In this document: piece after piece, positions 6,601 to 26,500 of the stretch
Numbering within the stretch: the first letter of the stretch is position 1
How the letters are laid out: each line of letters starts with the position of its first letter
Source of the DNA: Klebsormidium nitens
Taxonomy: Eukaryota > Plantae > Klebsormidiophyceae
Assembly (NCBI GenBank): GCA_000708835.1
Contig: DF237111.1
Span: 62,001 to 126,000, forward strand
Direction: 5' to 3'
DNA length: 64,000 nucleotides
Made by a program: the position numbers and the translations under genes
The notes under the pieces: model-generated
Databases searched by the model: none
What the model saw: only the letters and a program-made list of their open reading frames with translations
What the model was told of the DNA's origin: nothing

Positions 6601-9600
6601 TCCTCTGCGATGGTTCGGACTGATTTTGAGGATTCGTAGCACACGCGTACATTTTTGAGGGTAAAGTAAGGCTTCCTTGATGGTCTGATTGCTCAGCTTT
6701 GATGATCAAGTCCCAAACTCCGGTGCTTGCCTCCCTGTGAGAGCACTTCGCATGTAAACTGTCTGGTAGACGAAAGGCAGATCGGCAAAGCGAAGGCCTT
6801 CCAATAAAGAGGCCTGCGTTCTGATTCCTCGTCCCCAAGCGACGCAATGTGCATTTTTCATAATCGTCGCGATCGAATCCGCATCTTCTAAAGCGTAGTG
6901 AGGAAGGAGCACGGAATCTCCTCGAATATTGAAACTTCCTCCTGCTCGTTTGATCACAGCGACGCCCTATGATTCTCAGAGTATCCTTTCGCAGGTGGCG
7001 GCACATCAAAGCGCCATCTTCGGTCAGAAGTACATCGACCGTTACCCCCACATCGCTGCTGACATCAACTTCACGGCAGCAAAGTATTTCTGCCTGTCTA
7101 ACACCGTCAACATGAAAGCATGGATGCCGTGGGAGTTGCTCCCCTTCATTCGGGCGCGAAAGCGCGTCTACAGCTCGCTTTTGTGGGCAGTAGAACACAG
7201 CGAGTCGCCGCTGGTTGCCATCGTCAAGAAAGCCCACGAGGAGGTGAGGACACATATCTGAACGTGGGTTACCTGATAGTAGTTCCTTTAACACTCTACT
7301 TATAGGGATAGACACGTGTTTAGAAACGTGTTTAGAAAGTCCTTTCACCTATAAAGAGAGGTCCGCTTCCGTGCTTCCAATCGAGGCCTCTGAGAGGACG
7401 GGCTAAGAGTGTCGGTATTTTGATCTTTGAGGAGATTTTCCAGTGGATAATGTAGGCAGTGTGCAGACCTTCAGCGGAGCATCGGACTCAGAACTACGAT
7501 TCAGAGCGTTCACAGCACTCGATACCTGCACTGCCAGAAAGCTTCAATTGAGCCCACATTAGCAGTGGGCTTCTTGTGAACAATATAATTCAAACGTATT
7601 CGTTTGTTAGATAGTCACTCAAGGGGAATGGCGTCCTACTCCAGAATGCTCCTTGGAGCACTAAACGGTACTCGGGTTTTGCGCGAAGCAGATTCGAACG
7701 AATTTTGTGTCAAGCAATGCGCCCAGTAAGTTAGCGCGCAGCCTCTACTTCCAAAGCAAAGAGCTCTCTCCTCCTTTTCTGAAACGCGTCCTTACCTGGT
7801 TGGCAGGGCAAGATAAGCTGAGAAGAGATGATGGGCACGTTCCTGCTCTTCACATATGCCCTGGCGCCTTCCCGTACCGTCGTATACGCGCTCGCCCTCT
7901 TATCGAGTTTGCCAAACGAGCACGACCGTATTGCCAAGGAAGTTCGCACGAGGTTAATTCCCTTGCTTAATATAAAGACGGGCAAGGTCGATCCGCGCGA
8001 GTGGGCACGTGGATGAAGGACCTGGACGACATGGATAACCTCAAGCGATGCGTGAGGTAAGCGATGACGTCAAAAGAGCATGGGTCACTCGAATCGCGAC
8101 GAGAGCAGAGTTGCGGAGGCTTCTATAAGAAGCGCTTCAGGTCTTCAGGCGACGATGGAGTCATCTATGAGAACGCCTCGTTCTTTCTGAGTTATCCGAC
8201 AGCTTTTCAACGAGGTCAGGCGGAGTGGCAGGTCACGGTCTGATGTAGACCAGGCAATTCAGAATCTCTAATTTTATCCGATCGAAACACTATTTCGAAA
8301 CGGCTCCGTGTCTGGTGGGCTTCAGGCAAAGCTCATGATTCTGACTACATTGCTTTAGAGGAAAGAGTAGGTTCGGGCAGAAAGGCTCGTGTCTCACTCT
8401 GCTCCAATACTTCCGAGAAATCTCGAGCGAACGCATTGCACATCTTTTCCTGCTTCCCTGCGTCAGGGAGTAGATAGATTTAAGCGAACAAGCTGCGAAT
8501 ATCTTTCTGCGTCTCTGCTTCAGGGAGACGCTACGTTTGTACCCCGGGGTTCCGCTGCTCATCCCGCAAGTTGCGGCCCGCGATTTGCGGGTGGGCTCCT
8601 GGGACGTCAACAGGGGCGCCATCATTTTTACGTCACCCTTTCTGTCGCACCGGGATCGAAACGTCCACCCGGACCCCGACATGTGAGACCGCTTCCTTTG
8701 CACAGCAAAAATGATTAAAGTCCCAATGTTTTTGCTTTGAAAGAAGATGTAAAATTGGCAGAAAGGGTGTCGCCAAGACATGTTTCTTTCGAGAAAATCC
8801 AAATCTCTCTCTTCAGCCCTACGGACCGGTCTCCACTGTGTGTCTGACAGTTCCTATAGAAGCGAAGCATGTGAGCTAGCTCTCTGAGGTCAAATAAGCG
8901 AGTGTTCTGTAATGCTGGAAATGAGCGCTGATGGTTTTCAGAGGTGCTCGCCTTGAAAGCACTTTTTCAAAATGCGTTTATATTCATCAAGCCTCCATAA
9001 TCTCGCCGCGTCTTTCACCTGACAGTTCGTACAGCTTGCTCCGTGTTACATTCCACTTGCTCCGACACAGCTCAGAACTCACGCTGACCACAAGAAGAGC
9101 TTTGAATAAACCCAAGTTTCCGTCGTCAGGTACGATTCGAGCCGCAGTCTGGAGACTGGCGCTCCGCTCCCTGACGGCACCTCCACATTTTTCCCCTTCT
9201 CCGTCGGCCCCCGTTCCTGTGCGGGCCAGTTTTACTCGGAGCTTTTCGTCCAAGGCGCTGTGGCTATCGCTCTTCAGGATCACGAATTTGAGGCGAAAGG
9301 GCCGGTGCCACCACCGGCTATGGTTGCGTTCTGTCAGCCTATGGCGCCCGCCTATGCGAGGATCAGGGCGGCCCCGAGTGTCGGGAAGAAGCAGCAACCG
9401 CAGGTGCGGGAAACGTTCCGCGATTTGAGCCCTTGATGTTTGGAAAAGTTTTTGAGGCTCCCTTTGAAATGGGCGCGGTGTCTTCTTCTGGACTTCAGTT
9501 TCCGTTCACTCGGTCTTTTTTCTGACGGCAATCCAGCTGCCCGAATCGCTCGTCGAATCAGATGCTTAATAATGCGTTACTTTCTGAACCCTCATTCTGA

Positions 9601-12600
9601 TCTGATTCCTCTCTTCTTTAGCAAAGCAGCAGTGGGGTTGGCTCCCAGTAATGGATTTTACACCCACCTCTTCTTGAACATGGCTTCCTCGCTTAAGAGT
9701 TTTCAAACGCGTTAGTCCATCCCGGACCTTTTACAACTCCCCTTCGTCTTCTGTACAGGTGTCGACTCCAACCGTCAGCAGCAATTCGCCGGTTGCGGAT
9801 CTAGAGTGCAAAGTGGAGGCGCCGCATCTGGAGAATGTTGACGTCATCACGATCCTCTTCGCGTCCACTCATGGCACGTCGCGGGCGTTCGCGGACCGGC
9901 TCGCTAGAAGTCTCCAAGAATCGGACGTCGCTGCGCTCGAGCCCGCTCCTTTCATCCGGGTACGTACCAGAGTTTGAGACCCGTTTAACGAATCTAGTGG
10001 GGCTTTGAAATTCCAACAGATTCTGGCAGGTCTTTGATATGAATCCTGTGGAGACAATTCGTGCAAAGACGTTTCTCTTTATCAGATCCGATCTGATTGG
10101 TATCGTGATTTGGACTATCGCGAAAGTTCGCCACGAATGATCCGGATGTTTGTATGTTGCTTCCGGGCTAAGTTCGCTCTCCTCACATAGAAACAATGGA
10201 GATCAGATTGAGATTGAGACCTTACCTTCTGTACTTTTACCAAGCTTTAATCAAAAGTCTCGTTTATCGGCTCCGCATGAGAACGCATCGCAGGTGTTCA
10301 AGAACCCGCTGACCTGACGTCCGCAAATCTGTCCGCAGGTCTGCGACGCCGCGCGCTACCAGCCGCCGGAGCTCGCGCGCGAGTCGCTCGTCATCTTTTT
10401 GGTGTCAACTTTCGGTCACAACCAGCCGCCCTACTCCGGGGCGGCCCTCAAGGCGTTTGTAAACGACCCCGGCACAAAACTACCCGGATTAACTTACACC
10501 GTTTTTGCGCTCGGCAACTCGGTTTACCCAAGCTTCTGCAGCTTCGGCAAACTGTTCGATAAGCGCCTCGCGGAAGTGGGCGCCCGGAGGCTGATGCCGA
10601 TTACGCTATGCGACGAGGTGGGCTGTTTTGTACGACGTTTCTGATGATTCTTAAATAGCTCTAGGAGAGTGTAATCTTTGCAGAACGCGATGGAGAATCT
10701 TCAAAGCGATCTGAGGTTCACAAGTTGGGTTTTTCTAGTTTGGGATAGCTCTTATATAGCCCTTGGAGAGTCCGAGTGTAGAGTAAAAAGTGGACCAACC
10801 GCGATCGTTCCGAAGTACGTTCGTCGGTCACGTTCTCCCGTTCAGCGAGAATGGCGTCTCTGATTCTTTCCGTGCGTACATTTTGGCGCAGATCGAGGAT
10901 CAGGAGGGGGCCTTTGTTGCGTTTCTCGACCGAGTGACCGAAGTCCTCTACAGCTCCTTGGAAGGGATCCCTTCGAGTAAGTCAACCGACCTGACTGTGG
11001 CGCGTTATGCACGCGTATCTTTTCTGAGTGTTGATCCTGCAAGGAAAATAAGCAAGGACTCAATGATCAAATTCACAACCAGCTACGCCTGGCGACAGGA
11101 TCGAGCGCTTGCACGCCTTCATTACTTGACGAGTTTTCAGCTTTTGCTCGGATTGGTTGAGACCGTTCTGGAAGGCTAAGCTTCCTCACTGTCAATCCCA
11201 GGTCCCGCCAGTGTGCTGCCGTCGTCTTCCGGCGCACCACGGACCGCTCGCCCGAGCGGAAAGACGAGTGTAAATAAGCACAAGAGTGACGTCACACGTA
11301 CGGTGAAGTCTGAGCAGCCCCTCGGTCCCCGCTTCCGGTTGGTTGAGCTGGGGAGGGGGCGCGTCGGACGTCAGCGCGGAGACAGCGACGTCAGCGAGGG
11401 ATCCCCCAAGGGCACCCGCGACAACCCTCTGGAGTTCCAGGTAGGCCACGTGTCGAAGTTCTTGCGACGAAGCTCGATTGCACCAGGCAACGAAGTTAAG
11501 GCACGAAGCAACGGTGTCATTGCTTTTCGAGAGATTCTTGTCATCAAGGAGGCAGTGAAGCGCGCTGAATTGCAGAGCTTTTCGTTTGGCTTCCAAGGTG
11601 GGACGAAAAAGCAGACGATTCCTGAGACCTCGTACCGTTCAGGACATTGGAAGAAGTGATCATATCAAGTGGCAAGAGACTTGGTGATTCATGATGTTCG
11701 CACCGCGGTTTTCGCTCTTCTAATCCGATGGAAAGGCCGATTTTTGGTAGCCAGATGTACTGGCTCCTTTGATCCAACGTTCCCGAATTCGTCCCGACTG
11801 TCCGAATTTGTGTCAATACTAGAATGTTCCTAACTACTGGTTCCAAAAATTCAAGAAAACCTCGTGAGCAAATGGCACCTTTTTATGCTTCGGAGATTTT
11901 CTGTGCAGGTCCTGAGCAACAAGTGCCTTCGCCCCGACACTACCCTGGGACAGGTCCGCAACGTCGCGCTGCGGATGCCTTCGGACGGTTCGATCTCGTA
12001 CCAGCCAGGAGATATATTCGTGGTGTACCCAGGTATGCTCTTATCCCGCCTCTAGTTACTCCGCTTGCCGACGCATGATTTTACTTGCAATTGAACCGGT
12101 GGATTCGTATTCGACCGGTGGAACCGTTTTTTGAGCTCCAAGACTGCAACATGACAGATCTGCTTTTTACATCATATTGCTGTTGCAGGAAAGATTTGCA
12201 AGGGGAGTACTGATGAACCCTTGAACAAGTCAAGGAGCGTAAGAGAAGGCGTCCTTGACAGCCAACAATTGAGTAGCATCAATTCAGAACAGGCTAGGTT
12301 CCAGACCTCTCCAGAGCAACTCGGATACACTGGGGTCTTCAGGCTGACATGATCCGCTATACAAGGGCTGCATTCAGTGGATTGGGCGTAATTTCTGCAC
12401 ACACAAACCTCTTCAATGAAAAATTCTCCTCTCAAGTTCATCTTCGACAAATTACCCGCACAAATCCTCAAACCATGCATCTCTTCTGCAGTGAACCGGC
12501 TCGACTTAGTCGTCTCTTTGGCAACACGCCTAGGCATCCAGGATCTTGACCTCGAGTTTGAACTGCGGCCTTTGGCCCCGGAGAAGGTTCAACTGCAATC

Positions 12601-15600
12601 GCCCTTCCCCGAGAGGATGACGTACTGGCTCGCGCTGACGTCATACCTTGCGATTCAACGGGTTCCTCAGCCCCACTTATTGCAGATCCTGCGGCAGTAT
12701 ACCGACGACTCGGAAGAGGTAAGACTTTGTGAGATCACCGACTTTACTCAGTCAGTACGCACGTTTCTGGCCTCTTGACACAACCGGCTTTTTTGTCCGG
12801 TAGCTGGGCGGATGTGTCAAAGCAAAAGTTCGGAAAGGCGGCGACGCCCTCGCTCGATTTTCGTGCAGACGTCGCCGGCGAAGTTTAGGGGCCGAATCTG
12901 CAGAGAGCAGTAAATGCGAACCCCATCGGACGATCCGCAGGGTTGAAGTTGGGGGATGCCCCCATCGATCGACGAATCCGAACTTTTCTTGCCGGGACCA
13001 TGAGCGTGCCTACTGACTGTACTAGGAGACAACCACGTGGCGCCTGCAAGGACTTTTCGTTCATACAGTCCGGTCTATGAATCCATCAGATTCAACTGAG
13101 AGACGCATGTTTCATCCTTTTGAACGAGTTCAACCCGAATCTGTTATCCAACACTTTGCTTTACAAACCATTTGAGGAGACCGACTGCCACGCTCCTGGG
13201 TTGGTCAGCTCGTTGGCCCTCCATCGACTAGAACAGAGTCTGCCTTCTTTTATGACGTCAGACCGTTATCATACCTTCCCAAACCCTTCTTTCCATACCG
13301 CTTCGCAGGCAGCCCGGCTCGCCATGCTGGCAAAAGGCGGTCCCAAGTACACGGAATGGGCTCTTGGAAGCCACTCTCTATTGGAGACGCTGTACCAGGT
13401 TCCCTCGTGCAAGCCGAGCGTTGGGCACCTCTTCGAGTGCCTCCCCCACCTGCAGCCGCGCATGTACTCGCTTTCCTCCTCGCCGCTGTATCTTCCGGGG
13501 GAAGCGCATCTCACGGTCGCAGAGGTAAATGCTGGAGTGTTACTCTTTGCGCTTGTTTTGGTCTCCAGCCTCTCTCCAGCCCTGTTCCACCTCCGGATTC
13601 AAAAAACCTGAAACCTGGCAATCAATTGCACGAATGGACTTCATACAGTACATTTCAAGCGCCGGAAAGAACGACTGCCGTGCCTAAAGGCGAAGTGCAA
13701 ATTATCCTTAGGTCTCCGCTGGTGGGTTGTTCAATCTCGGAAAATAAGGAAGATCAAGAAAGGGCGCAAGGATCTAAAATTGGGAGGTGATCACTTTCAA
13801 CGGAGCCCAATTGCCCACACGCCTCTCGACCCACTTGTATTCGCTCAACAGTAACTCAGCAACCAGATCCTAAGATCTTTACACCCCAAAGTGAACTCTT
13901 GAACCCCAATGTTCACCCACTAGTCTACCTCACCAGGTGATTTACCAATCCCACGAGCACGCGTGGCGGCGCGGCGTGTGCTCCACGTTCCTGGGAACGG
14001 AACGCATGATTCCGTCCTCTGCGGCGGACGACCGCCAGAAACTTCTCGGGTTTGTGATGCCCAACCCGGGGTTCCTTCTCCCAGAGGACGTCCGTACACC
14101 AATCATCATGATTGGCATGGGCTCGGGAATTGCTCCCTTCCGGGCCTTCTGGCAGGAACGGTTGGTTCGCGCCGAGGTGAGTGACGCTTCTCTAGAGCAA
14201 CCTGCTAGTTTTAGTGCAGCATCATGTGCAAGTTAGTCATTCTGCTACTAAGTGGAAAATTTTGAGTCAGTTAACACCGATTCTTGGCAGGAGTGGTTGG
14301 TTCGCGCCAAGGCAAGCCTCCCGGTCTACAATTCTTGTGTCGATACGACTGATGTTTCAAGAAACTCAGGACGTCGTTCTCTGTCTGCGGAAAGTAACAA
14401 TACTGGCTCAGACGCTGCCTCCAGTTTGCCGCGTGAATCGGGCATACGAGATGAGAACGACGAAACGAAAACGAGAGCCCTTGCGAGAACGAGTCAGCTC
14501 GTAACCAGTCCGTCTAATCTGACGTTCCAGTCTCAACGGCTTATCTTTGCAGAAACTTTGGTGAAAATGTTCAGAGATCCGGTCCCTGTTTGGTGACCAA
14601 AAAGCAGGAACCAAGTTTCGTGGCGTTGTTTACTCCTTCCAGTTGATATTCGCGGCGACCGCGACAGTGCTACCACTGCTATGCAGACGTCCGCGATCCG
14701 TTTTTCGAAGTGCTCCTTAATCCGCTGCTTTTAACCTGTAGGAATCAAAAAGTGGTGGGCAACTTGGGGATGCGCTGATGTACGTCGGTTTCCAGAGCAG
14801 CGTCAACTCGTGCTATTTGGACGAGCTGCAAGACGCAAAGGCGGGTGGCGCGCTTTCTAAGGTAAGGGTAACTGAAGTAACCCTAGTGGGTTCCAGTAAC
14901 CAGCCCAATCATACTCATTTTCAGCCAGGTGGCCGTCCACTTGTTGAGGTGTGCGACAGGTTCCGAAGAGAAGTCCGGTACTGGGGTGCCTTGGTGTCGG
15001 GAAGGAACGGTAAAGGTCTTGTCGGCTTGAAGGGTTGATCCATGGATTCGCGAAGGAAAATTCACCGTTGTGCAAGACACGTTGTTTTTAGAACAGGGAG
15101 CGCGTAGGATTGAGAACGTACTCATAGAGGGCTAGGAAAAATAGGGGTTCCGAGTTCTTCTAGGAATCTGAATTCAGGGTTCAGAGACCAAATAGGTCTT
15201 CGACTTTGATTACACTGCCAGCTCTGTCAAAGTACGTGCGGATATGCGCCATGCAAACGAAGTGCTGCGGTCAACGTTCAGAGACGTGGCTTAACTTTTG
15301 CGTCGCCAACAGTTACAATCAAAGGTTGAGGGCTTGTCGACTAAACAGGCTCCGAGAGTTCTTTCGCCGAAAATTTCATTCGTAAGCACGAGCCTGGTTC
15401 AATTAGCCACAGGGCAATACAACTTGACCGTACACGCTTTCAAAACCACAGTTTGGCACTACTTTGTGCAAGCTCTTCTGGGAGGACGCGGTTCCGCTGA
15501 GAGTCGCCTGTTTCCATATGCTTTTCTACAGCTGCGAGTGGTGTTGAGCCGTGAGGGAGAGCGCAAGTACGTCACGCACGCACTCGCAGAGGATCAGTGG

Positions 15601-16587
15601 TCGCTGTGGCACAATCACCTGAGCAAAGGGGCGGTGGTCTACATCTGCGGGACAATCGACGCCGCAAATGACGTCAGATCCACCATGCTGGATGTCTTGA
15701 AGGAGGTGGGGGGAACGCGTTCACAGTCGCAGAAGCTTCGAGACAGCAACGATCTGCGGCGATTGTGAATGAATCCAATCGGCGGAATGTAAACCAGTCC
15801 AATTGGCAGAAAGGGTGGAAGTGGGTGGCCTGCAAATGCGCGTAGAAAGGCAAGGGTTAATATCTAGTAGCAAGGGTGTTCCGTACTCGCGCTTTGAGTT
15901 GATGTTTTTGACAACCGACAAGAGTCGCTTCGCTTCGTCGGTCGCTTACCAGCGCTCAGGTAGTCGGCTTTTCTGCGTGAATTCTTTCAGATCCTGGCTA
16001 TCGGCGATCACTCAACGGGAATTACCTTTTACAACTCAACGGTGCTTCAAATTGCAGGCCGGAGGCATGGCTGAAGACGAGGCTGCAGCTTGGTTGGAAA
16101 GCGCTCGCGACAGTGGGCGGTACAAGGAGGAGGTCTTCGGCGAGAGTACCCAGTCCTACTCAAAGACACGGATGGAGGCACGACTCCGGAAAGCAAGGTA
16201 CGTTTGCGATCTGTCGTCTCGTTATGATTAACTAAAAGTCAGCCCCGTGGTTGCTTTACGCACAAGCGAAAACCCTGTCTGACCTTGGAAGCACGTGTCA
16301 AGCTTTCAAAGGGAGCCTCTTCGTAGATGGAAATTTTGCAGAAAGTATAAGAAGCTTGGCCGCTATGGTTCTGCTTTTTGCACGGTTACCAAAGCTTCTA
16401 GGATTTTTTCGACCTTCTCTTGCCCAAGACGTACAATACTGACCGCTTTTCCCGGCCCCCTCCGATCAAATTGGTGAACATTTGTGCTCACGCGTTGACT
16501 TGCAGGGCAAAGCTCCGCACTGCTTTCGCCCTCCTTGGTGCGAAGGGGATTCAGCGCATCTTGGAAACCGCTCCACCAGACCTTTAG
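3641..16587 (+). CDS. Cytochrome P450 - diflavin (FMN/FAD/NADPH) reductase fusion; carries an in-frame TGA and a 1-nt frame break in this assembly
   Basis: Exons: ATG 3641-3643 (ATG|GTGAGT; alternative ATG 4043), 4049-4210, 4695-4983, 5388-5673, 6179-6419, 6995-7243, 7807-8056, 8524-8682, 9130-9403, 9759-9959, 10339-10617, 10892-10976, 11202-11440, 11909-12032, 12492-12718, 13309-13524, 13937-14176, 14742-14861, 15532-15705, 16058-16197, 16506-16587. All introns are GT-AG and phase-compatible except for a break inside 7807-8056. P450 motifs: WLLHR (WxxxR), RETLRLYP (ExxR), HRDRNVHPDPD, FPFSVGPRSCAG (heme Cys 9218-9220). Reductase motifs: ASTHGTS, STFG, ALGNSVYPSFC, LQPRMYSLSSSP, GVCSTFL, GMGSGIAPFRAF, SREGERKYV, VYICG, RYKEEVFG. 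First and last exons are less certain. Confidence 0.9.
5102..5137 (+). repeat. Intronic echo of P450 exon end plus donor
   Basis: gggtgtcagacacggctgccgcaag|gtaagc copies 4958-4995. Confidence 0.9.
14285..14316 (+). repeat. Intronic echo of reductase exon end (donor GT to GC)
   Basis: tggcaggagtggttggttcgcgccaaggcaag vs tggcaggaacggttggttcgcgccgaggtgag at 14150-14181. Confidence 0.85.
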
Positions 16588-17528
16588 ACGACGATACGCT
16601 GCTGAGAAGCATACCTCCGAGTCTGGTCGTACGTTCAGCTTTGGAACCTACTACTATCCTGGCGCGAAAGGATTGTTCTTGAACCAGCCTTTTTCAAGCA
16701 CTTGTTGGCGGAGACTCAGCCGTACTGGTCGTTGTATACGGCCCCGGAACAATCCTGTGTTTCAGATTGGATTCACGGTGGCATGCAGCGGTAACAGCTG
16801 ATGCTACCCAGGGGCTCCTTAGGGGCCCGCTCCCAATTTCGGTGACTGAAGCCTCGATCATAGGTTTGCAGCACATGGCATGCCTACTATGGTGACTGAA
16901 AAGATGTAATAGCGAAAGGTTGAGCCAGAGCTTCGATCTGGGTTTTGCGTAGCTTAATTGCAGATATGCATGTCCGATCGGACCACATATTGAACGTACT
17001 GGCCCGGGCTGTCCGACAACGACACGGTGCATGACGCCACGGTGCGGCTTCACAGTATAGCGTACAGCCATGGCCGCAACGAACGAAAACTTTTGAATCT
17101 CAACCAGCATGCACGTGTTGCGCAGTCATATGCATGAGCGAACTTCAGTTTGGAAGAGTGGGCAACCATCATTGAAGTTGTCCGACTTACCGGCTGGCGC
17201 ATCCGACAGTTTGCAAAGCTATTCTGACCGGATACTGGCACTGACAACATGCTTGCATCATGGCATGCCGCGCAGGCTCCATGGTTGCTCAAACAGAAAT
17301 TTCAAAAGTGGTGTCAATGAGGGGCCTGTGCGCCATGAGCCAGACACAGAACAACCACATGGAAATTGACTCTGACCTTCTCAGCATTCATCTGAACACC
17401 AGTACTGACATTCAGAAAAAGGCGTGGCTTGACTGTATATGAAGCGGTTTCCGGCCTTACAACACTGCTCGACACGGTAACATTCACACCTGTACCGACA
17501 CTACGACTCAGTTCGCTACTGGATCCCC

Positions 17529-20500
17529 TCAGCTTGCGTCCATCGCATCCGTTGCCACTAGCGTGTCGCTCTCGTGCTGCACAGCATTAAACTTCTCCGC
17601 TAGAGTACCGGTCCGAACCACACCACTCAGGAACGTCTTAAACTTAGCGCTGCTCGTCTCCGCATCCGGGATCTTAGCGAGCGAGTGAATGGCCCTCAGA
17701 GCGCTTCGAATCATGTCCTCGTTCCGGTCCACTTCCTGCTTCACGGCGTCCGTCTTCACCTTCTTGGTCACCGTTGCTTGCAGAGGCTCCACCAGCGCAT
17801 CCAACTCTGCGGCAAAGCGTGGAGTTGAGAGTTGAACCGGGACGTGCCCTTGTTTGTCAAAACACCCAATCTAAATCCTACGGCTGTCAAAATCGCTGCG
17901 CTGACTTAAAAAGCGTTTGGTTGGAGCTTGCTACCAAGCTGCACCGGAACTCAGCGCTTACAAAATTCTTTGCTGTTGGAACGACCAACCGTGCTTTTTC
18001 TGGAAGATTCGTTGTTCAATCCGGTTGATAAACGTGAGCTGCAGGCCATCTTCTCGAGAAGAACTTCCGAACCAGGTTTCCAAGATCCTTTCTGATGTTT
18101 TAAGGTCTGCATAGCCTGCACCAGTTCTACACTTTGCCAAGCCGCAGGGTAGAAGACTCGTCATCAGAATTCCCTCAGCATCACATAAGCTTGGCATCAC
18201 ATTACGGATATGTACTAACACCCTACTCAAAGAGCAGCGTGACATCACGCTCACCTGCGACAACCGCCGGCCCACATGTGACCGCGAGCTTGGACAGGAT
18301 GAGGTGACACGGCATCTTGACGTCAGCGTGATCCCCGAGGCCGCTCACGAGGTACGGGTTGATGAAGCGCGACGGGTCAATGCGGTCCAGGCACGCGTCG
18401 AGTAACGTGTCCATGCACTCGAAGGCCGTCTTCCGGATTTCCAGGCCGTCGTCGATTGTGTGCTTGAACGGGCCTAGGTCGACCACCCTGTAAAGGTTTG
18501 CGGCAAAGGGATGAGAACTTGGTTCTTGACGATGGGCCTTGAAAACGATCTGCTTTTCGAAGGGGCTTGAACGCCTGTGCTCTTAGATATGAGAGCGCTT
18601 TGGCCTGATGCAGTCAGGACGCATAAGAAGGGGCTTCAAGCGAAACGCCTCACTTCGAGATCGCATAATCGGGCTACTCAAACACCGATCGCCCTTGCAA
18701 TCAAAGAACGGGCAGAGGGGACGAAAGGCACTGCCTGGGACCAAAGTTACCAAACCAGACGTTTATAGTGATACGAATCGTAAACCCTACGTCCCCAAGC
18801 TTTGCAAACGCGATCGCACCTGATTAGCTCCTCCTTGACAAGTGTCAGGTCGTACAACTTGGGCCGTATCGAACTCATGGACGTTACTTCACTTTTGAGA
18901 CCAAGACCACTAGAACAGCTTAGACCCGAATTGCAAACTCTGACCCACCTGATGAGCTTCTTATTAAACAGCGTCAGGTCGATATAGCTTCACCAGTTTT
19001 CGAACCCTCAGGCACGCCAATCATCCTTAACATCCGCCGGAGACAAAAGCACTGACGTAGCTCACACCCTGAACTTCAAACCCAACCCAATCCAGAAATC
19101 TTAGCCAACCCAATAGTAGCTATGACCCACCTGATGAGCTCTTTCTTAACCAGCGTCAGGTCGTACAGCTTGGGCAGCAGCCCCGGGAGGTGATCCGCCA
19201 CCAGCCCGGCCTTGTTGTGCGCTGCCGTGCTGAGCGCCGACACCGTCGCGCGCCGCACGTGGCGGTCGGAATCTTCGATCAAGCTCAGGAACTCGGCGAT
19301 CGACGCCTGGATGAAGGAATCGACGGCCTGCGGACCCTCCACGATAGTGAACTTGAGGGCTGTCACGACGGTGGCGCGCGTGAACGCGGACGGGTTCTTG
19401 GTGTGCTCCTGCGCAGGGTTTGCGGGGTTGGCGTTAGCTTTAGAGCAAGTAGGACGAGTCTTTGGAGTGATCTTGTGCACGGTTAGACTGGCGGGGGTAG
19501 GGTGAAAATGAAGTGCAGTATGTTCGTTTGTTCCGTGGTTTTCACCTACTGTGTTTGGTGTACTCTTACGACAAAAGAATCAAAGATGCACGGTCTTCAT
19601 GCCTTTTTTCGATTCTTTTATGTGTGCTTCCTGCCGTGATGCGCAGCAACGTGGACGCTCTGAAGGAGCTTCGGGTGTCTGAGTTTCGTGGTCGGAGTGT
19701 TCAGTCCAGTCGTTTCATTCATTCGTTGCGGAGGTTTCGTAAGCGGATTTGACAAGCTTCAATCCTCACAAATTAAGCGGAAATCTGTTCCGGAGCAGAC
19801 GCAACTTCTTTCAAGACTCTTCAAACAGCTGGACGGAGCAAAGCAATCTGAGTTCACGGCTTGGACTCTTTTCGGAACAGGAACTCTGTTCCCGAAGAAG
19901 CGATGTATCCGTAGATCAAAGCCGCTGCCCAACTGGTACAATCACGAGTACGTTATGCTCAGCGGTCATGTTCTTACCTGGAGGTCCGGTACAATCCTCG
20001 CGGGCTCGATAAGCGCCAGCTTCCCGAGGCACTCGGCGACGACGTTCCGCACGCCCTCCTCCTCGCTCTCGCAGTGGGAGAAGAGCAGCCGCAGGATCTT
20101 GTCCACGTCAGCAGACTGGAGCTCCACCTGGCGGGACACGTGGACGGGCTGCCGGGCAATCACCTGCAGACAAAGGGAGAGACTATTTGAGGATGTTTCT
20201 GAGGAAGCAATCCAGGGAAGCAATCCAGGAAAGCCAGCTGCGCTGCCCCCTAAATTGGTGTTTCTCACCAGATTGTCCTAGCGGACGACTGAGAATTGTG
20301 ACTTTCGAACAAATATTGAAAAACTTGAGAGAGTTTGAGAGAGCTCCGCACCCAACCTGACGCTTTCGTCTATGAGAACGGGGTGCACTAAGAACAAGAA
20401 TGGCTCTACCCTTGCCGAGTCGAGCTTCGACAACTTGCAGGGATAAACAGCCTTTGGTCGGATCAAAATTCAAGAGCGACTGTGCGTTAAAGTTGCCGGG

Positions 20501-23500
20501 CGAATGCAGCGGGCACCTTACCTCCTTGAGCGAGTGCAAAAGCAGGTATTGCTGCTTGGGCTGCGCGTCAATTTGCGCAAGGATGAAGCCCAGGTACTTG
20601 TGGAGGTTGCCGACCGCGATGTTGCCCAGCGAGTAGGAAGCCGCGGCCTTGATCTCTTCGCTTGGAGACCTGCGGAAACGTGCAGATTATAGGTTGAGTG
20701 TCTTTGAAGACGGTCAGGGAACTTCAACCATAGAGAAAAAGGCTCAAAGGATATGTCCTGAATTCAGAAGAATCATCGATCTTCAAGCAGTCGGCGTTGC
20801 AACCATGCAGGCGAATAAAAGGCGCAGGGCTATTAGGAGATTGAAAACGGTCTAGCAAGCTTTTAGGAGCGTGGAACGAAGTGCGTGACCGGTAACGACA
20901 CCTTATGCGCTGTTGCAAGGAGACGAGGCTCCAGCGAATCAAATCGCAACCAGCTAAGGGCCGGATGACATTCCCAGTCCTTACAAATCCAACCATTCGC
21001 CAGTCCTGCGCTTCCTCCTCAGATAATCCACGAGGAGTTAAGTAGTGCGACATCAGCGATAAGGCGTGAACTGAAATGGGCAAAAGGTTACGTTTCTTCA
21101 CGTACCCGAACGCGCTCGTGACAATCCCCTCCACGTCCGCGTGCTTGCTCAGGTCCCGCCGCCGCCCGATCTCGCCCAGCGCCAGCAGGCTCAGCAGCTG
21201 CACCGGCTCTGCGCCCTTCGCCCCCGAGTCCCGCAAATTTTTGATCAGCGTCTCCACCGTCGATTTCACTTTGGCATCCCCGGCAGCCGTACACAAAACC
21301 GCCACGCACTGCGCGACCGAGTGGTATGCTTGCTTGCCGGCCGGGCCAGTGCCGGTGGGAGAGCCCAAGGGGGCGGTGATGCCGGAAGAAGAACCGGCTG
21401 CCGAGCCGGAGGGTTGGGGCTTGGCCGACGCAAGGAGCGCGCTGAGGAGAGAGTCGAAGCTGGCGGTGTTGCTCTGGACGAGTGCGGCGAAGAAGGCCTG
21501 GAGGGTCTGCAGGGGCGGAGAGGAATGGGGGAGTGTGAGTCAAGGGCGTTGTGAAATCGAGAAGCAGTTTGGCTGTTTGCTACGTTGCTCAAGCAGTGAA
21601 GAGACGGTTGCTTGAGCATATTTGCATCTGATTGATGTCTCCATTGGTATCAAAGAAGAGCTTTCAGCGGCGCCTCAAAAAGATCGCTGCGACAGTAGTA
21701 TGTTGCGGGTCTCTCGGGAAAAGGCTTGAGTGACCCCTCAGGTGTGACGGCACAGCACATTGACTCTCTTCGATAGCAACAGCGGATGAGCGTGCAACTA
21801 CAGAAGCGGCTCTACGCGAGCAACTCTTCCAACTCATTTTACACACCCAAGAAAAGGACAACAGATGCTTGGCTTTCCGCGGACCGACCTGGAGTGCCTG
21901 CCCCTGCAGCAACGAGCTGCGCACGAGCAGCAGCGTCTGCGGGAGGACCTTGTCCCGCACGGCGCCGCCCGCCGCCTGCGGCTGCTTCGCGACCATGCTG
22001 ACGCACAGCGACAGCGCAGACGCAGCCATCTGCAGGTCCGAATCGCTGACGAGGCCCGACAGCTCTCCAACGATTGCCTCGATGCTCGGGGCGTCTAACT
22101 GGGCACTGTAGTTGGTGGCGAGGGCGTCGAGCGTGGAGAGCGCCGCGAGGCGGAGCGCCCGGTTGGCCTTGCGGAGGAAGGAGGTGAGTTCGGCGACGGC
22201 GGGGGCGAGGATCGGGGAGAGGTCGACGTGGAGGGGCGAGCGGGCGATGGTCTCGAGGGCCTGTAAAAGGACGATATCTGTATGTTTTCAAGATGTCTTC
22301 AAGTCCTTGAGCGTCAATATGAGGGTTACAATTCTCCAGATCGTGCTTGAAATTGAGTGCAACAAAATGAATCCTGCAGAGCATTGACCGACGGCGTGTT
22401 TCAAAAAGCTCCTTGGAAAGTACTCCCTGCTTTCAGCTACATCGCAGAGTTGTAAGTAAATGCGAGGCGGTGTTCTTCCACAATCCAGTTAATAATGGAG
22501 GGCAATGTCGAAACTACGCGAAGCCAGATCAAGTCTCCTTGGACCTAGAAGTTTCAATCCAACCCGATACTTTCACCGCAGTCGATTCAACCCACCTTGA
22601 CAGCTGTCAGGCGCGTAATCTCATTCCGGAGGCGGTCCAGCAGCAGGTTCAGGCTAGTGGGCAGTTCCGACTGGAGCTTATCCCCCAGGATGGAGATGAC
22701 GAGCCCCGTCGCAATGATGGCCGACTCCTTCACCTCCTGGTCCTGGTCCTGGGCGGTCAGCCGCTTCTCCACGGCGCCATAGATCGGCCGGACGTACGAC
22801 TCGAAGGCGAAGCTCTGCAGGCAAACAAACGGTCCATCATTGTATCCCGATCCGACGACGGGTTCCAACACTTTCGGCCTTCTGCAGAGCAACCTGGGTA
22901 GAAAGCAGAAAAGGCAGACCCAGGCTCGAAGAACGTTGACTGCCGCGAACATGGCGGCCCTTTTTTAAATCAAAAAAGGGGGTCTCTCTTTTTCCTTCCA
23001 GCAAAAGTTACAGCAGGACAGATTGAGTGCGCCCTTTACTTCAAGCGGAGGTAGTGCTTTTAATGCTTGGAACTGCCTTCGAAAAGGTCCTACACAAGGC
23101 ATCTTCTCACCGTGACAAAGGGAAGCGGCAGTCACAGTGGAACTCTGACCGGAGGTCAAAGATTTCAGAAAGGGATGACATTGAAAAAGGACCTATTCTC
23201 ACCTGGCCAGAGGCTGGCCGAATGACCTTCACTAGCTCGCCAGTCACTCGCAGCGCCTCGGATGTGACCTTGTAATACCGCTCCCCGACTGCTGCCAGGA
23301 CAGGCGATGAGAGGGCCTGCAAGATGGATACGGGCTGAGAACTTGCTCCTAATAGGACCGTGCAAAAGACTCCGCTGGCTGGACAGACAATTGCTTCGCA
23401 CGCGGACCAACCCCCAAATCAACGCCGAATAAAATCTATACCCTCAGGTGAAGCACCGGTTCGAAATGACGCCGTTACAGGAGTGGTAAAGCTGTGTAAG

Positions 23501-26500
23501 CGTGCCAGGACATCTGAGGCTCGCTTCAAAATTTGCCAGTCCAAGGTCGCTTGAAAAGCACGGAATCTTCTGCCAGTCCAAGGTCGCTCGAAAAGCACGA
23601 ACGGGGCTACCTGGGCGTGGTAACGGACGGCCAAGCTTCTTTACCCAAGGAGAAGCTTTCTTTGCCGAGGGTAATCGAGTTCTACCTTGATGTGGGGCTG
23701 GAAGACCTCCGGGCTGTGGGACGAGAGCACGAGGCGCGTGAACACGAGCGCTTCGATCTTGAGGCTGGAGTTGGAGGACCGGTCTTCCAGGGCACGCTTG
23801 ATGCCCGGGACGAGGGACGCGAAGTGGTCGGCGAGGCTGTTGGGCAGGACCACCACGAGCTCCCGGAGCACGGAGAAGACGCCGACCTGCAATGGCGAAT
23901 CTCAGCGCCCTCAATGTGGCGCGGTTTATAACAAGACGGGTTCCCTTACAAGACGCTGTGGTAGAACGAGACTGCTTTCAGTGTGGTTTGCCAACTGTAA
24001 CCGGACTGTGCGGACCTCGAGAATATGGTGTGGAGTAAGTTACTGGCTATGATGCACTTGCTATTGATCGAAGCGTTTGCGTTCCTGACAAGCAGGAGAA
24101 GCAGTTTAGTCACTTAGTGGAGACAACCCTGACAAGCAGGAGAAGCAGTTTAGTCACTTAGTGGAGACAACGCTGCCGCGTAAAGGAATGTTTGGACATC
24201 TTACTCTGGTCTTGACAGACTTGTGCTTGAGCTGCTTGTTTAGCGAACGCACAAGCTTGGGCACTTCTTGTTGGAGGAGGTACAGGGGGCTGCAGGAGCG
24301 CAGAAGAATCAGCACTTCTTCATTTGCACGCATGGTTGTTCTTTGTACGTTCACATCGACCGGACCGAGACTCGCAGAGTTCTGTACCAAAGTATTGCGG
24401 ATCCCCCAAGCAAAAGATACGTGACTGAGCCTTTTTACTCATCAAATGCATAAGCATCCCCGACGATTAGCACCTTACCAGCCGACTCATGTTGGCAGGT
24501 TCTCAAAGACGAGGAGTTTTGGTGTCTGCCTGAGTTGCGGATCGATGGACTGTGTCATTGGCTGCACGAATGGTCGCCTACCTCGAAGGAGTGAGTTCCC
24601 CGCCCTTTGTGATGAGCCCCGTCTGTCGAAGAAGGTCGCTGAAGGCGTTGAACAGGTCAATCTGCAGGACAGACAAACGGCGTTGTGTACAACTGGCACA
24701 GATCTGTAAAGGTGCAGAACTACATACTGCGAGAAGGTCGGCAATCGAAGAGGAAGTTGCGCATCCAGGCACTTTCTAAATTGCACTGGCTGAATCGCCG
24801 ACATCTCGTGGTCTCCTGCTATTACTCAGCCCTGTTTGTCCGTGGTTGGAATATCTCACCTTTACATTCTCTTCCCGCTCCTTGAAGCGGTTGATCAGCT
24901 CAGGGCATGCCTGCACAGCGTGAGCGGCGGTTTTGAGGGTGCAAGTCCACAACCCCTGATCGATTCGAGACTGATGTGCAAGAGGAGCCGACGATGATAC
25001 AAGAACCTCTTGCTCGAAAGGAAGTCTACTGTCAGCAGAAACGTTTAATCTGGAGTCGTCTGGAAAAGTCGACCCCCCCTGGCCATCTGATTCTCTCTCA
25101 GAAAAGCAAGCACCTACCTTGTACGTTTTGAATTCTCTTCTTGAAGGTAGATCCTTTAGCTGGATCTACAAAGCCATCACGCACAACTAACGAGAGAGCG
25201 TCAATTACAGTTGGTCAACAAACCCAGGTACTGCAGTCCCTCACCTTCTGATAGAGCAGGGCAATCATCTCGGGCCTTGACGTGATCACCGCCGACAGCG
25301 TCTTTGCAGCTGCCCGCCGCACCTTCCAGCTCACGTCCTCATCATCGCTGTACTCGTCTGCGCTCTCCCTGCAGATCCAAACGCGCAGATTCAGTGTTTC
25401 AAATTACTCCCAGATGTTGAGTCGATCTTACCTTGTGTTACTCGATCACAGAGAAAAGACCTCTGTCGCAAGCAAGACCCTTCCGCGTGCCGCTTCACGT
25501 CTCCAAGCAACGGATGACAGCACAGTGCCTTGTCCTAGCTAACCGAGTCGGAGCTTCGAGAAAGGTTCGCTCGCTGTCGCCCAAACAGCCTTCATTTTCT
25601 TTCTCTTCTCAAGTCCAAGCTGAAATCAGGGGCGACGCCAAAATGTCGCTCATCGTCCTCTTCCTCCTCCTCCTCCTCATCCTCGTCTATGTCATCGCTG
25701 TGCTTCGGGTCGTAGCTCGAGAACACCAGACCACAAACTAGAGGTGGAATCAAAACGAATGCTGCTCACTCGTCCTCTTCCTCTTCCTCCTCCTCATCTC
25801 CCTCCTCTTCGTCCTCGTCCATGTCTTCGCTGTAGTTCGGGTCGTAGCTCAGAAACTCGAGTGCTAGGTTAAGGATCGCGTCCGTGTGCTCCGACACGTC
25901 GCGCGGGCAGCGCAGCACGAAGCTCTCCAGCGCCTGCAGGCTGTACTCGCGCAGCTCGTCGTCGTTCTCGGAGGCCTCCTTGCAGTATGTGATCAGCAGC
26001 AGTACAACCTCGCTCAAGTGGGGCCCGAAGCGATACCCAACGGAGCGGCTGCAAACAGAAGGAATATCTGCGTTGTGAACTGGCGAGGAATTCCGACATA
26101 TGCACGTGTGTTTCGATGATTGAAACTGAGCGACAGAAAGTGCATGTTGGAGGCCACGGCGAAACTTCGGGTGCACTGAAGCAAAAGAGTGGTGGCCCAG
26201 GATGTGAACCGGCAGAGCGACCGTTGAAACTGTCAACATCTGCAACATTCATGTGTGCTTCTTACGATGCGCCAATATTGCCGCCCTGGCAAGGCCCAAT
26301 TACAGATGCGAACGACCTCCATTGGCATCTCACGAGCACACTGAATTGGTGCTCAACTAAGATTCTCGTTGGTTAGCTCAAGAACCTCGTTTGGAAAGAA
26401 AGACCGGTCCCACTTACCTCAAGGATCCGATTGTCTGGATGTACGTTCTTATCATGTCCACTTTGAGGGACGTGTCCTTCAGCTGCTCGACTACCGCCTT

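Follow-up and report, generated by a model that had tools for sequence, protein, structure and literature searches.

Self-sufficient cytochrome P450s, which carry their reductase on the same chain, are known mainly from the bacterial CYP102 and the fungal CYP505 families, whose reductases resemble the cytochrome P450 reductase (CPR). Another system with a diflavin reductase is the nitric oxide synthase (NOS), and two true NOS genes, KnNOS1 and KnNOS2, have been described in the streptophyte alga Klebsormidium nitens (PMC8728061). Here we analysed a stretch of 64,000 nucleotides of this alga (contig DF237111.1, positions 62,001 to 126,000 of the forward strand; hereafter the window), which is intron-rich eukaryotic DNA with a G+C content of about 52%. 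We propose, with modest confidence, that positions 9759-16587 of the window form the C-terminal half of a single spliced gene for a self-sufficient P450, whose reductase is allied to those of NOS and of two P450 fusions from protists. In the literature searched, of which our coverage was incomplete, we found no description of a natural fusion between a P450 and a NOS-type reductase.

The reductase part consists of 12 exons on the forward strand (2127 nt, 708 amino acids) and has the domain order flavin mononucleotide (FMN), then flavin adenine dinucleotide (FAD), then NADPH. Splice sites were read from the window sequence and the exons were joined by script; position 9759 is the first base 3' of an AG acceptor, 16587 is the last base of a TAG stop codon, and all 11 introns are of the GT..AG type, with lengths of 225-670 nt. 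On these exons Pfam detects Flavodoxin_1 (E 2.1e-18) and FAD_binding_1 (E 2.6e-14 and 3.1e-6), as well as the beginning of NAD_binding_1. The exons upstream correspond to a P450 (PF00067) and have no match to the NOS oxygenase (PF02898). The Pfam matches of both the P450 and the reductase are far beyond chance, and, judged by its domains, the gene product is not a NOS. The peptides on which the initial annotation was built (STFG, ALGNSVYPSFCSFGKLFD, GVCSTFL, GIAPFRAFWQERL and RYKEEVFG) are all in frame on the forward strand, within the positions that it had given.

That annotation had recognised a NOS-type reductase and not one of the CPR or CYP102A1 (P450 BM3) type, and the trees agree in part. 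Maximum-likelihood (ML) phylogenies were computed under the site-heterogeneous model LG+C20+F+G4 with posterior mean site frequencies (PMSF), the tail columns being dropped by the fill filter. They included 8-10 metazoan NOS, 6-8 animal CPR, 8-14 protist CPR-like, 9-23 bacterial SiR-type and 8-20 eukaryotic multi-flavodoxin reductases, as well as three bacterial and one fungal P450-reductase fusions and P0081 and P0151, two open reading frames (ORFs) from EukProt protist transcriptomes. In the 46-row tree, the whole Klebsormidium reductase groups with NOS (ultrafast bootstrap (UFBoot)/SH-aLRT 91/86), and a larger assemblage of this reductase, NOS, P0164 and P0081/P0151 is separated from CPR, CYP102/505-like, SiR-type and multi-FMN reductases (84/80). 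A quick tree of 84 rows recovered the same neighbourhood with a support of 82, the pairing with NOS reached an SH-aLRT of 95 in a quick tree from which the three other long rows were removed, and the FAD/NADPH part alone also joins NOS (90/89). In approximately unbiased (AU) tests, a clade with the 13 CPRs of animals and protists (difference in log-likelihood 12.3, p 0.029) or with the CYP102/505-like fusions (10.8, p 0.031) is disfavoured, and one with P0081/P0151 is not rejected (2.2, p 0.32). Among the sampled families, the reductase is therefore placed outside the CPR and CYP102/505-like clades, and its affinity to NOS is moderately supported. In the same trees, P0164, a Cylindrotheca closterium protein named NADPH-hemoprotein reductase, adjoins NOS and the P450 fusions and not the CPR clade; it has a very long branch and ends in ...GRFCADLAG, with no aromatic stacking residue.

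Several points weigh against this placement, and they are also what one would expect of a different history, in which a fast-evolving offshoot of CPR or of another non-NOS lineage was fused to a P450, acquired NOS traits by convergence and is drawn to NOS by long-branch attraction. The branches of both partners are long (1.64 for the Klebsormidium reductase and 0.77 for the NOS stem), the AU p-values are marginal, barely below 0.05, and the FMN part alone groups with P0081/P0151 (92/89) with no link to NOS. In addition, CPR from plants or algae, NOS from algae, MSR and NDOR1 are absent from the trees that group the reductase with NOS and not with CPR or CYP102. Yet the site-heterogeneous model retains the pairing with NOS both for the whole reductase and for its FAD/NADPH part, the AU test disfavours the CPR and CYP102/505-like clades, and CPRs with GVC(S/T) are placed firmly inside the CPR clade. 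On this evidence and that of the following paragraphs, we consider such a non-NOS origin possible, though unlikely.

Raw similarity is one argument for a CPR-like or other non-NOS origin. Database searches were performed exon by exon, and their ranking in PDB is mixed, with plant CPR equalling or beating nNOS. Exon 2 matches the SiR flavoprotein (55 bits) ahead of CPR (45-48) and iNOS (46), exon 7 matches nNOS (42 bits) and plant CPR (41), and exon 8 matches plant CPR (43 bits) ahead of SiR and nNOS (37 each). Exon 10 finds animal CPR (25 bits) and not NOS, while nNOS is the sole match of exon 11 (E 0.02), in an alignment that extends into the tail. All families show a pairwise identity of 25-35% (NOS 29%, animal CPR 30%, SiR-type 31-35%), and with phmmer the FAD/NADPH part scores higher against animal CPR (median 183) than against NOS (median 166). 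Similarity to CPR and SiR-type reductases is thus as high as that to NOS or higher, and in this respect, as in the grouping of the FMN domain, the NOS reading of the initial annotation is weakened.

The protein searches yielded mostly vertebrate NOS and animal CPR. A search with the FMN exon among 1.84 billion representatives found no close full-length relative and only one near match, P0002, a fragment of 112 amino acids with 76% identity. The other top matches of this exon, P0001 and P0003-P0012, are large eukaryote-like proteins of unusual architecture, for which we found no name, with two to six tandem flavodoxins ahead of one FAD/NADPH module ending in Trp, and they form a clade of their own (100/100). 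Two further architectures were encountered: P0017 combines PDZ domains with two flavodoxins and a FAD/NADPH part, and P0145 joins an EF-Tu-like GTPase to a SiR-type reductase. Metagenome scans gave no match with exon 11, and with exon 8 only bacterial FNR or CysJ-like genes.

Discrete characters were tallied in 407 fetched proteins, 115 of which are NOS. The motifs that had been taken as diagnostic of NOS do not all have this value. STFG is present in 115 NOS and in 34 other proteins, YPxFC in 110 and 56, and GVCS in 111 and 17; all three also occur in bacterial SiR-type reductases, and plant CPR has GVCSTW. Because they are present outside NOS, these three motifs are not NOS-specific, and they add to the case for convergence. 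In contrast, APFxxFW is found in 112 of the 115 NOS and elsewhere only in four truncated NOS fragments. The residue at the FAD-stacking position is Phe in NOS, and among 187 non-NOS proteins it is Trp in 146, Tyr in 39 and Phe in only two. The Klebsormidium reductase has Phe at this position, its RYKEEVFG aligning with the RYHEDIFG of NOS. Tails of more than 10 amino acids outside NOS are limited to P0151 (35 aa) and P0011 (15 aa). The co-occurrence of three rare states, Phe, long tail and FW, in one reductase speaks against convergence. One of the bacterial P450-reductase fusions, the CYP102-like P0159, ends in RYVADVFA and has Phe at the stacking position; Phe over the FAD is therefore not exclusive to NOS, which again is in line with a non-NOS origin.

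Alignment shows further departures from NOS. The Klebsormidium reductase has Glu in place of the triad Asp, GFQ for GCR, CGT for CGD and GMGSG for GPGTG; the first two had been reported in the initial annotation and are seen here as well. The changes of Asp to Glu, GCR to GFQ and CGD to CGT, as read from the aligned residues, might lower activity, a further point against the reading that we propose. As previously claimed, the FMN domain lacks an autoinhibitory insert, the alignment having a gap there, and a second gap falls at the place of the NOS connecting-domain beta-finger. The hinge is long and rich in Ser, Pro and basic residues. The absence of the beta-finger, of the autoinhibitory insert and of a calmodulin (CaM)-binding linker is likewise what an offshoot of a non-NOS reductase would predict.

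Of special interest is the C-terminal tail. RYKEEVFG is followed by 45 amino acids, ESTQSYSKTRMEARLRKARAKLRTAFALLGAKGIQRILETAPPDL (ESTQ...PPDL), with a net charge of +6. The last exon and a tail of about this length had been predicted from the DNA, and both are real, because the intron at 16198-16505 is spliced out in RNA contigs. No stop codon was found directly after RYKEEVFG, and even the unspliced reading frame continues for 30 amino acids beyond FG. Its similarity to NOS tails is not significant in a hidden Markov model (HMM) comparison, in which 89 of 1000 shuffled sequences score as high, and this too counts against a NOS affinity. The tail had been described as a basic amphipathic helix that could bind calmodulin. 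It is indeed basic, but it is not strongly amphipathic, since the helical hydrophobic moment of its basic part is at most 0.29, compared to 0.53 for the NOS CaM site. The linker between the P450 and the FMN domain has a net charge of 0 and contains neither a basic amphipathic helix of the CaM type nor another candidate site. With a low moment and a linker that offers no site, the basic charge is all that speaks for calmodulin, and we did not retain this part of the annotation. A single formal 1-8-14 match in the tail (LRKARAKLRTAFAL, +5) was considered as a calmodulin-binding site and not adopted.

The gene model is supported by RNA in its 3' part and by conservation in its 5' part. Exon 1 (9759-9959, here and below on the forward strand) is delimited by splice sites and contains the linker and the start of the FMN domain (ITILFASTHGTS). 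Exon 2 (10339-10617), the source of the Flavodoxin_1 match, encodes the FMN core with STFGHNQPP, GNSVYPSFCSF and ALGNSVYPSFCSFGKLFD, and exon 3 (10892-10976) completes this domain. Exon 4 (11202-11440) encodes the long, low-complexity hinge and the start of the FAD barrel (NPLEFQ). Exons 2 and 3 and the two ends of exon 4 are kept, with 58-78% amino acid identity (78% for exon 2), in L001, a 1575-nt contig of a relative that was reached through the P0002 fragment. Over 155 codons of exons 2-4, the ratio of nonsynonymous to synonymous substitution rates (dN/dS) between K. nitens and L001 is about 0.17. This conservation and the low ratio support the upstream exons and indicate that the FMN domain is under purifying selection.

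Exon 5 (11909-12032), read from splice sites and the alignment, carries strands of the FAD domain (YQPGDIFVVYP), and exon 6 (12492-12718; FAD_binding_1, E 3.1e-6) the connecting domain, which in the alignment has no NOS beta-finger. Exon 7 (13309-13524; FAD_binding_1, E 2.6e-14) contains the FAD site LQPRMYSLSSS, and its 3' border is the first to be confirmed by RNA. RNA also confirms both borders of exon 8 (13937-14176), which encodes GVCSTFL, GIAPFRAFWQERL and the NADPH site GMGSGIAPFRAFWQERL and has PDB matches. The NADPH domain continues in exon 9 (14742-14861), with its aligned GFQ, and in exon 10 (15532-15705), with PDB matches, the LSRE...K 2'-phosphate site and ICGT; both are RNA-confirmed, as is exon 11 (16058-16197), which encodes RYKEEVFG and the first 19 tail residues. 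Exon 12 (16506-16587) supplies the remaining tail residues (AKLRTAFALLGAKGIQRILETAPPDL) and the TAG, and the intron before it is spliced in all four runs. The RNA evidence consists of contigs from four RNA-type runs of one study, compared over 10640-16639. Spliced contigs match the introns at 13525-13936, 14177-14741, 14862-15531, 15706-16057 and 16198-16505 to the base, and they extend beyond 16639 as 3' untranslated region.

The same contigs raise a point against a single fusion gene. In all four runs they begin within intron 6, at 13063-13181, and read unspliced through the acceptor of exon 7, so that the 3' part of this intron (13063-13308, forward strand) is present in RNA; they never join exon 6 or any exon upstream, and no full-length fusion mRNA was seen. 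The proportion of words that the runs share with 8.3 kb is 0.14-0.17, which the 3' contigs alone explain, and the only upstream RNA is one unspliced contig of depth 2 at 10761-11030. The starts in intron 6 may reflect an internal promoter, giving a short transcript for the FAD/NADPH part only, or a retained intron. Frame 1 of intron 6 is open from 13081 and has an in-frame ATG at 13252.

Taken at face value, these contigs could mean that there is no working fusion and that the locus produces mainly a short 3' RNA that begins in intron 6 (at about 13050-13180), with exons for the P450 and the FMN domain that are silent, separately expressed or parts of a decaying gene; that the junction between P450 and FMN domain has no RNA support fits with this. 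However, the frames of all upstream exons are open and their splice sites fit the consensus, the relative conserves the FMN exons with the low dN/dS ratio given above, and a protein starting in intron 6 would be without the initial strands of the FAD barrel. The protist transcripts P0081 and P0151 moreover carry P450 and reductase in the same architecture. Contigs show presence and not absence, and four runs of one study may be 3'-biased. We therefore regard the absence of a working fusion as improbable, more so than a non-NOS origin of the reductase, and continue to favour a single spliced fusion gene.

The P450 half of this gene is divergent. Pfam recognises only two of its exons, the K-helix segment with the ExxR motif (FRETLRLYP; 8474-8683, forward strand, borders approximate; E 1.6e-9) and the exon in which the haem-cysteine pocket (FFPFSVGPRSCAG) lies and the fold ends (9110-9403, forward strand, 5' border approximate; E 8.4e-5), for which we propose the 3' donor CAG/GTGCGG. 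The best PDB matches of the P450 exons are weak and scattered among CYP51, CYP17, CYP46, CYP97 and CYP4, with no match to CYP102, and among fusion P450s the closest is that of P0081. The P450 frame ends at a good donor (9403/9404) and the frame of the reductase starts from a good acceptor (9758/9759), both in phase 0, and no ATG occurs in the reductase frame ahead of its FMN-binding loop. Because of the matched sites and the missing ATG, the simplest reading is that a GT..AG intron of 355 nt (9404-9758, forward strand) joins the two halves, a fusion junction that we infer from the DNA sequence only.

If so, the encoded enzyme would consist of a divergent haem domain of the P450 type, a short linker that is not basic and a complete diflavin reductase. 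NADPH would reduce the FAD, the FAD would reduce the FMN, and the mobile FMN domain would then pass single electrons to the P450 haem of the same or of a partner chain. If NOS serves as a guide, the Phe and the tail may gate NADPH binding and the release of the FMN domain, giving the enzyme a built-in control of electron flow. As it has neither a CaM-binding linker nor an autoinhibitory insert, such control would not be a classical Ca2+/CaM switch.

The initial annotation had further suggested that a P450 replaced the oxygenase of a NOS by domain shuffling, but this analysis gives no support to that direction of events. It is possible that KnNOS1 or KnNOS2 is the source or the sister of the reductase module. 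A broader proposal is that NOS and the scattered P450-fused reductases of algae and protists all descend from one ancestral module, tail-bearing and Phe-gated, that became coupled to different haem domains in eukaryotes; we put this forward very tentatively and think it rather doubtful at present. If it holds, the gene would represent a self-sufficient P450 under regulation and a surviving relative of the module that gave rise to NOS, in an alga that has true NOS genes as well as P450s switched by a NOS-type tail, through phosphorylation or a Ca2+ sensor. The combination of a P450 with a reductase of the NOS lineage, bearing the Phe and the tail typical of NOS, in a streptophyte alga would be a third, independent kind of fusion beside CYP102 and CYP505. 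The origin of the NOS reductase module would become testable, as would the question of whether tail gating predates NOS or was reused for monooxygenases. For biocatalysis, the protein is of interest as a candidate for a regulated P450 on a single chain.

Two further genes were noted in the window, both on the reverse strand. At 17529-26252 lies a long gene of many exons, the ORF pieces of which resemble CAND1/TIP120, a cullin-associated NEDD8-dissociated protein. At 135-1636, ORF pieces that start with a Rossmann GxxGxxG motif (MKFFVTGASGFVGRHLVHSL...) probably belong to a gene of the NAD-dependent epimerase/dehydratase type.

Among known systems, microsomal CPR has the same three cofactor domains, and its raw similarity to the FAD/NADPH part is the highest or equal highest. 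It differs in its membrane anchor, in its end, which is Trp plus one residue, and in its YEHFN FMN loop; by alignment and motif tallies, the Klebsormidium reductase has neither the penultimate Trp nor a loop of this type. CYP102A1 and CYP505 would share the single-chain order P450-FMN-FAD-NADPH with the Klebsormidium protein, which would presumably be self-sufficient as they are. However, its reductase lies outside their clade (AU p 0.031), its P450 does not match CYP102 in PDB, and its gene is intron-rich, eukaryotic and algal. In the four sampled members of the CYP102/505 class, no more than three residues follow the C-terminal aromatic; this is Phe in P0159 and Trp in the other three.

P0081 and P0151 are alike in their P450-FMN-FAD order, in FMN domains that are sister to that of the Klebsormidium reductase (92/89), in a GSSV(Y/F)P..FAFGK loop and in GVCSSYL, and P0151 also has a basic tail of 35 amino acids. 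In contrast, identity is only 25-27%, the FAD/NADPH parts do not pair in the free tree, and the stacking residue of P0151 is still Trp. The C-terminus of the P0081 model is broken.

Finally, NOS differs from the Klebsormidium protein in its N-terminal partner, which is a NOS oxygenase and not a P450, and in its basic CaM-binding linker, autoinhibitory insert and connecting-domain beta-finger, none of which is present here. Identity is about 29%, the triad Asp is replaced by Glu, and the similarity of the tails is not significant. Nevertheless, the reductases of metazoan NOS1-3 share the FMN-FAD-NADPH layout and the Phe-Gly at the FAD-stacking position, NOS have in common with it the motif APFRxFWQ and, in the FMN loop, YPxFCxF, and the tail of 45 amino acids is similar in length to those of the sampled NOS (29-87 aa). 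In the 46-row tree, the metazoan NOS reductases are the nearest clade to this algal reductase (91/86).

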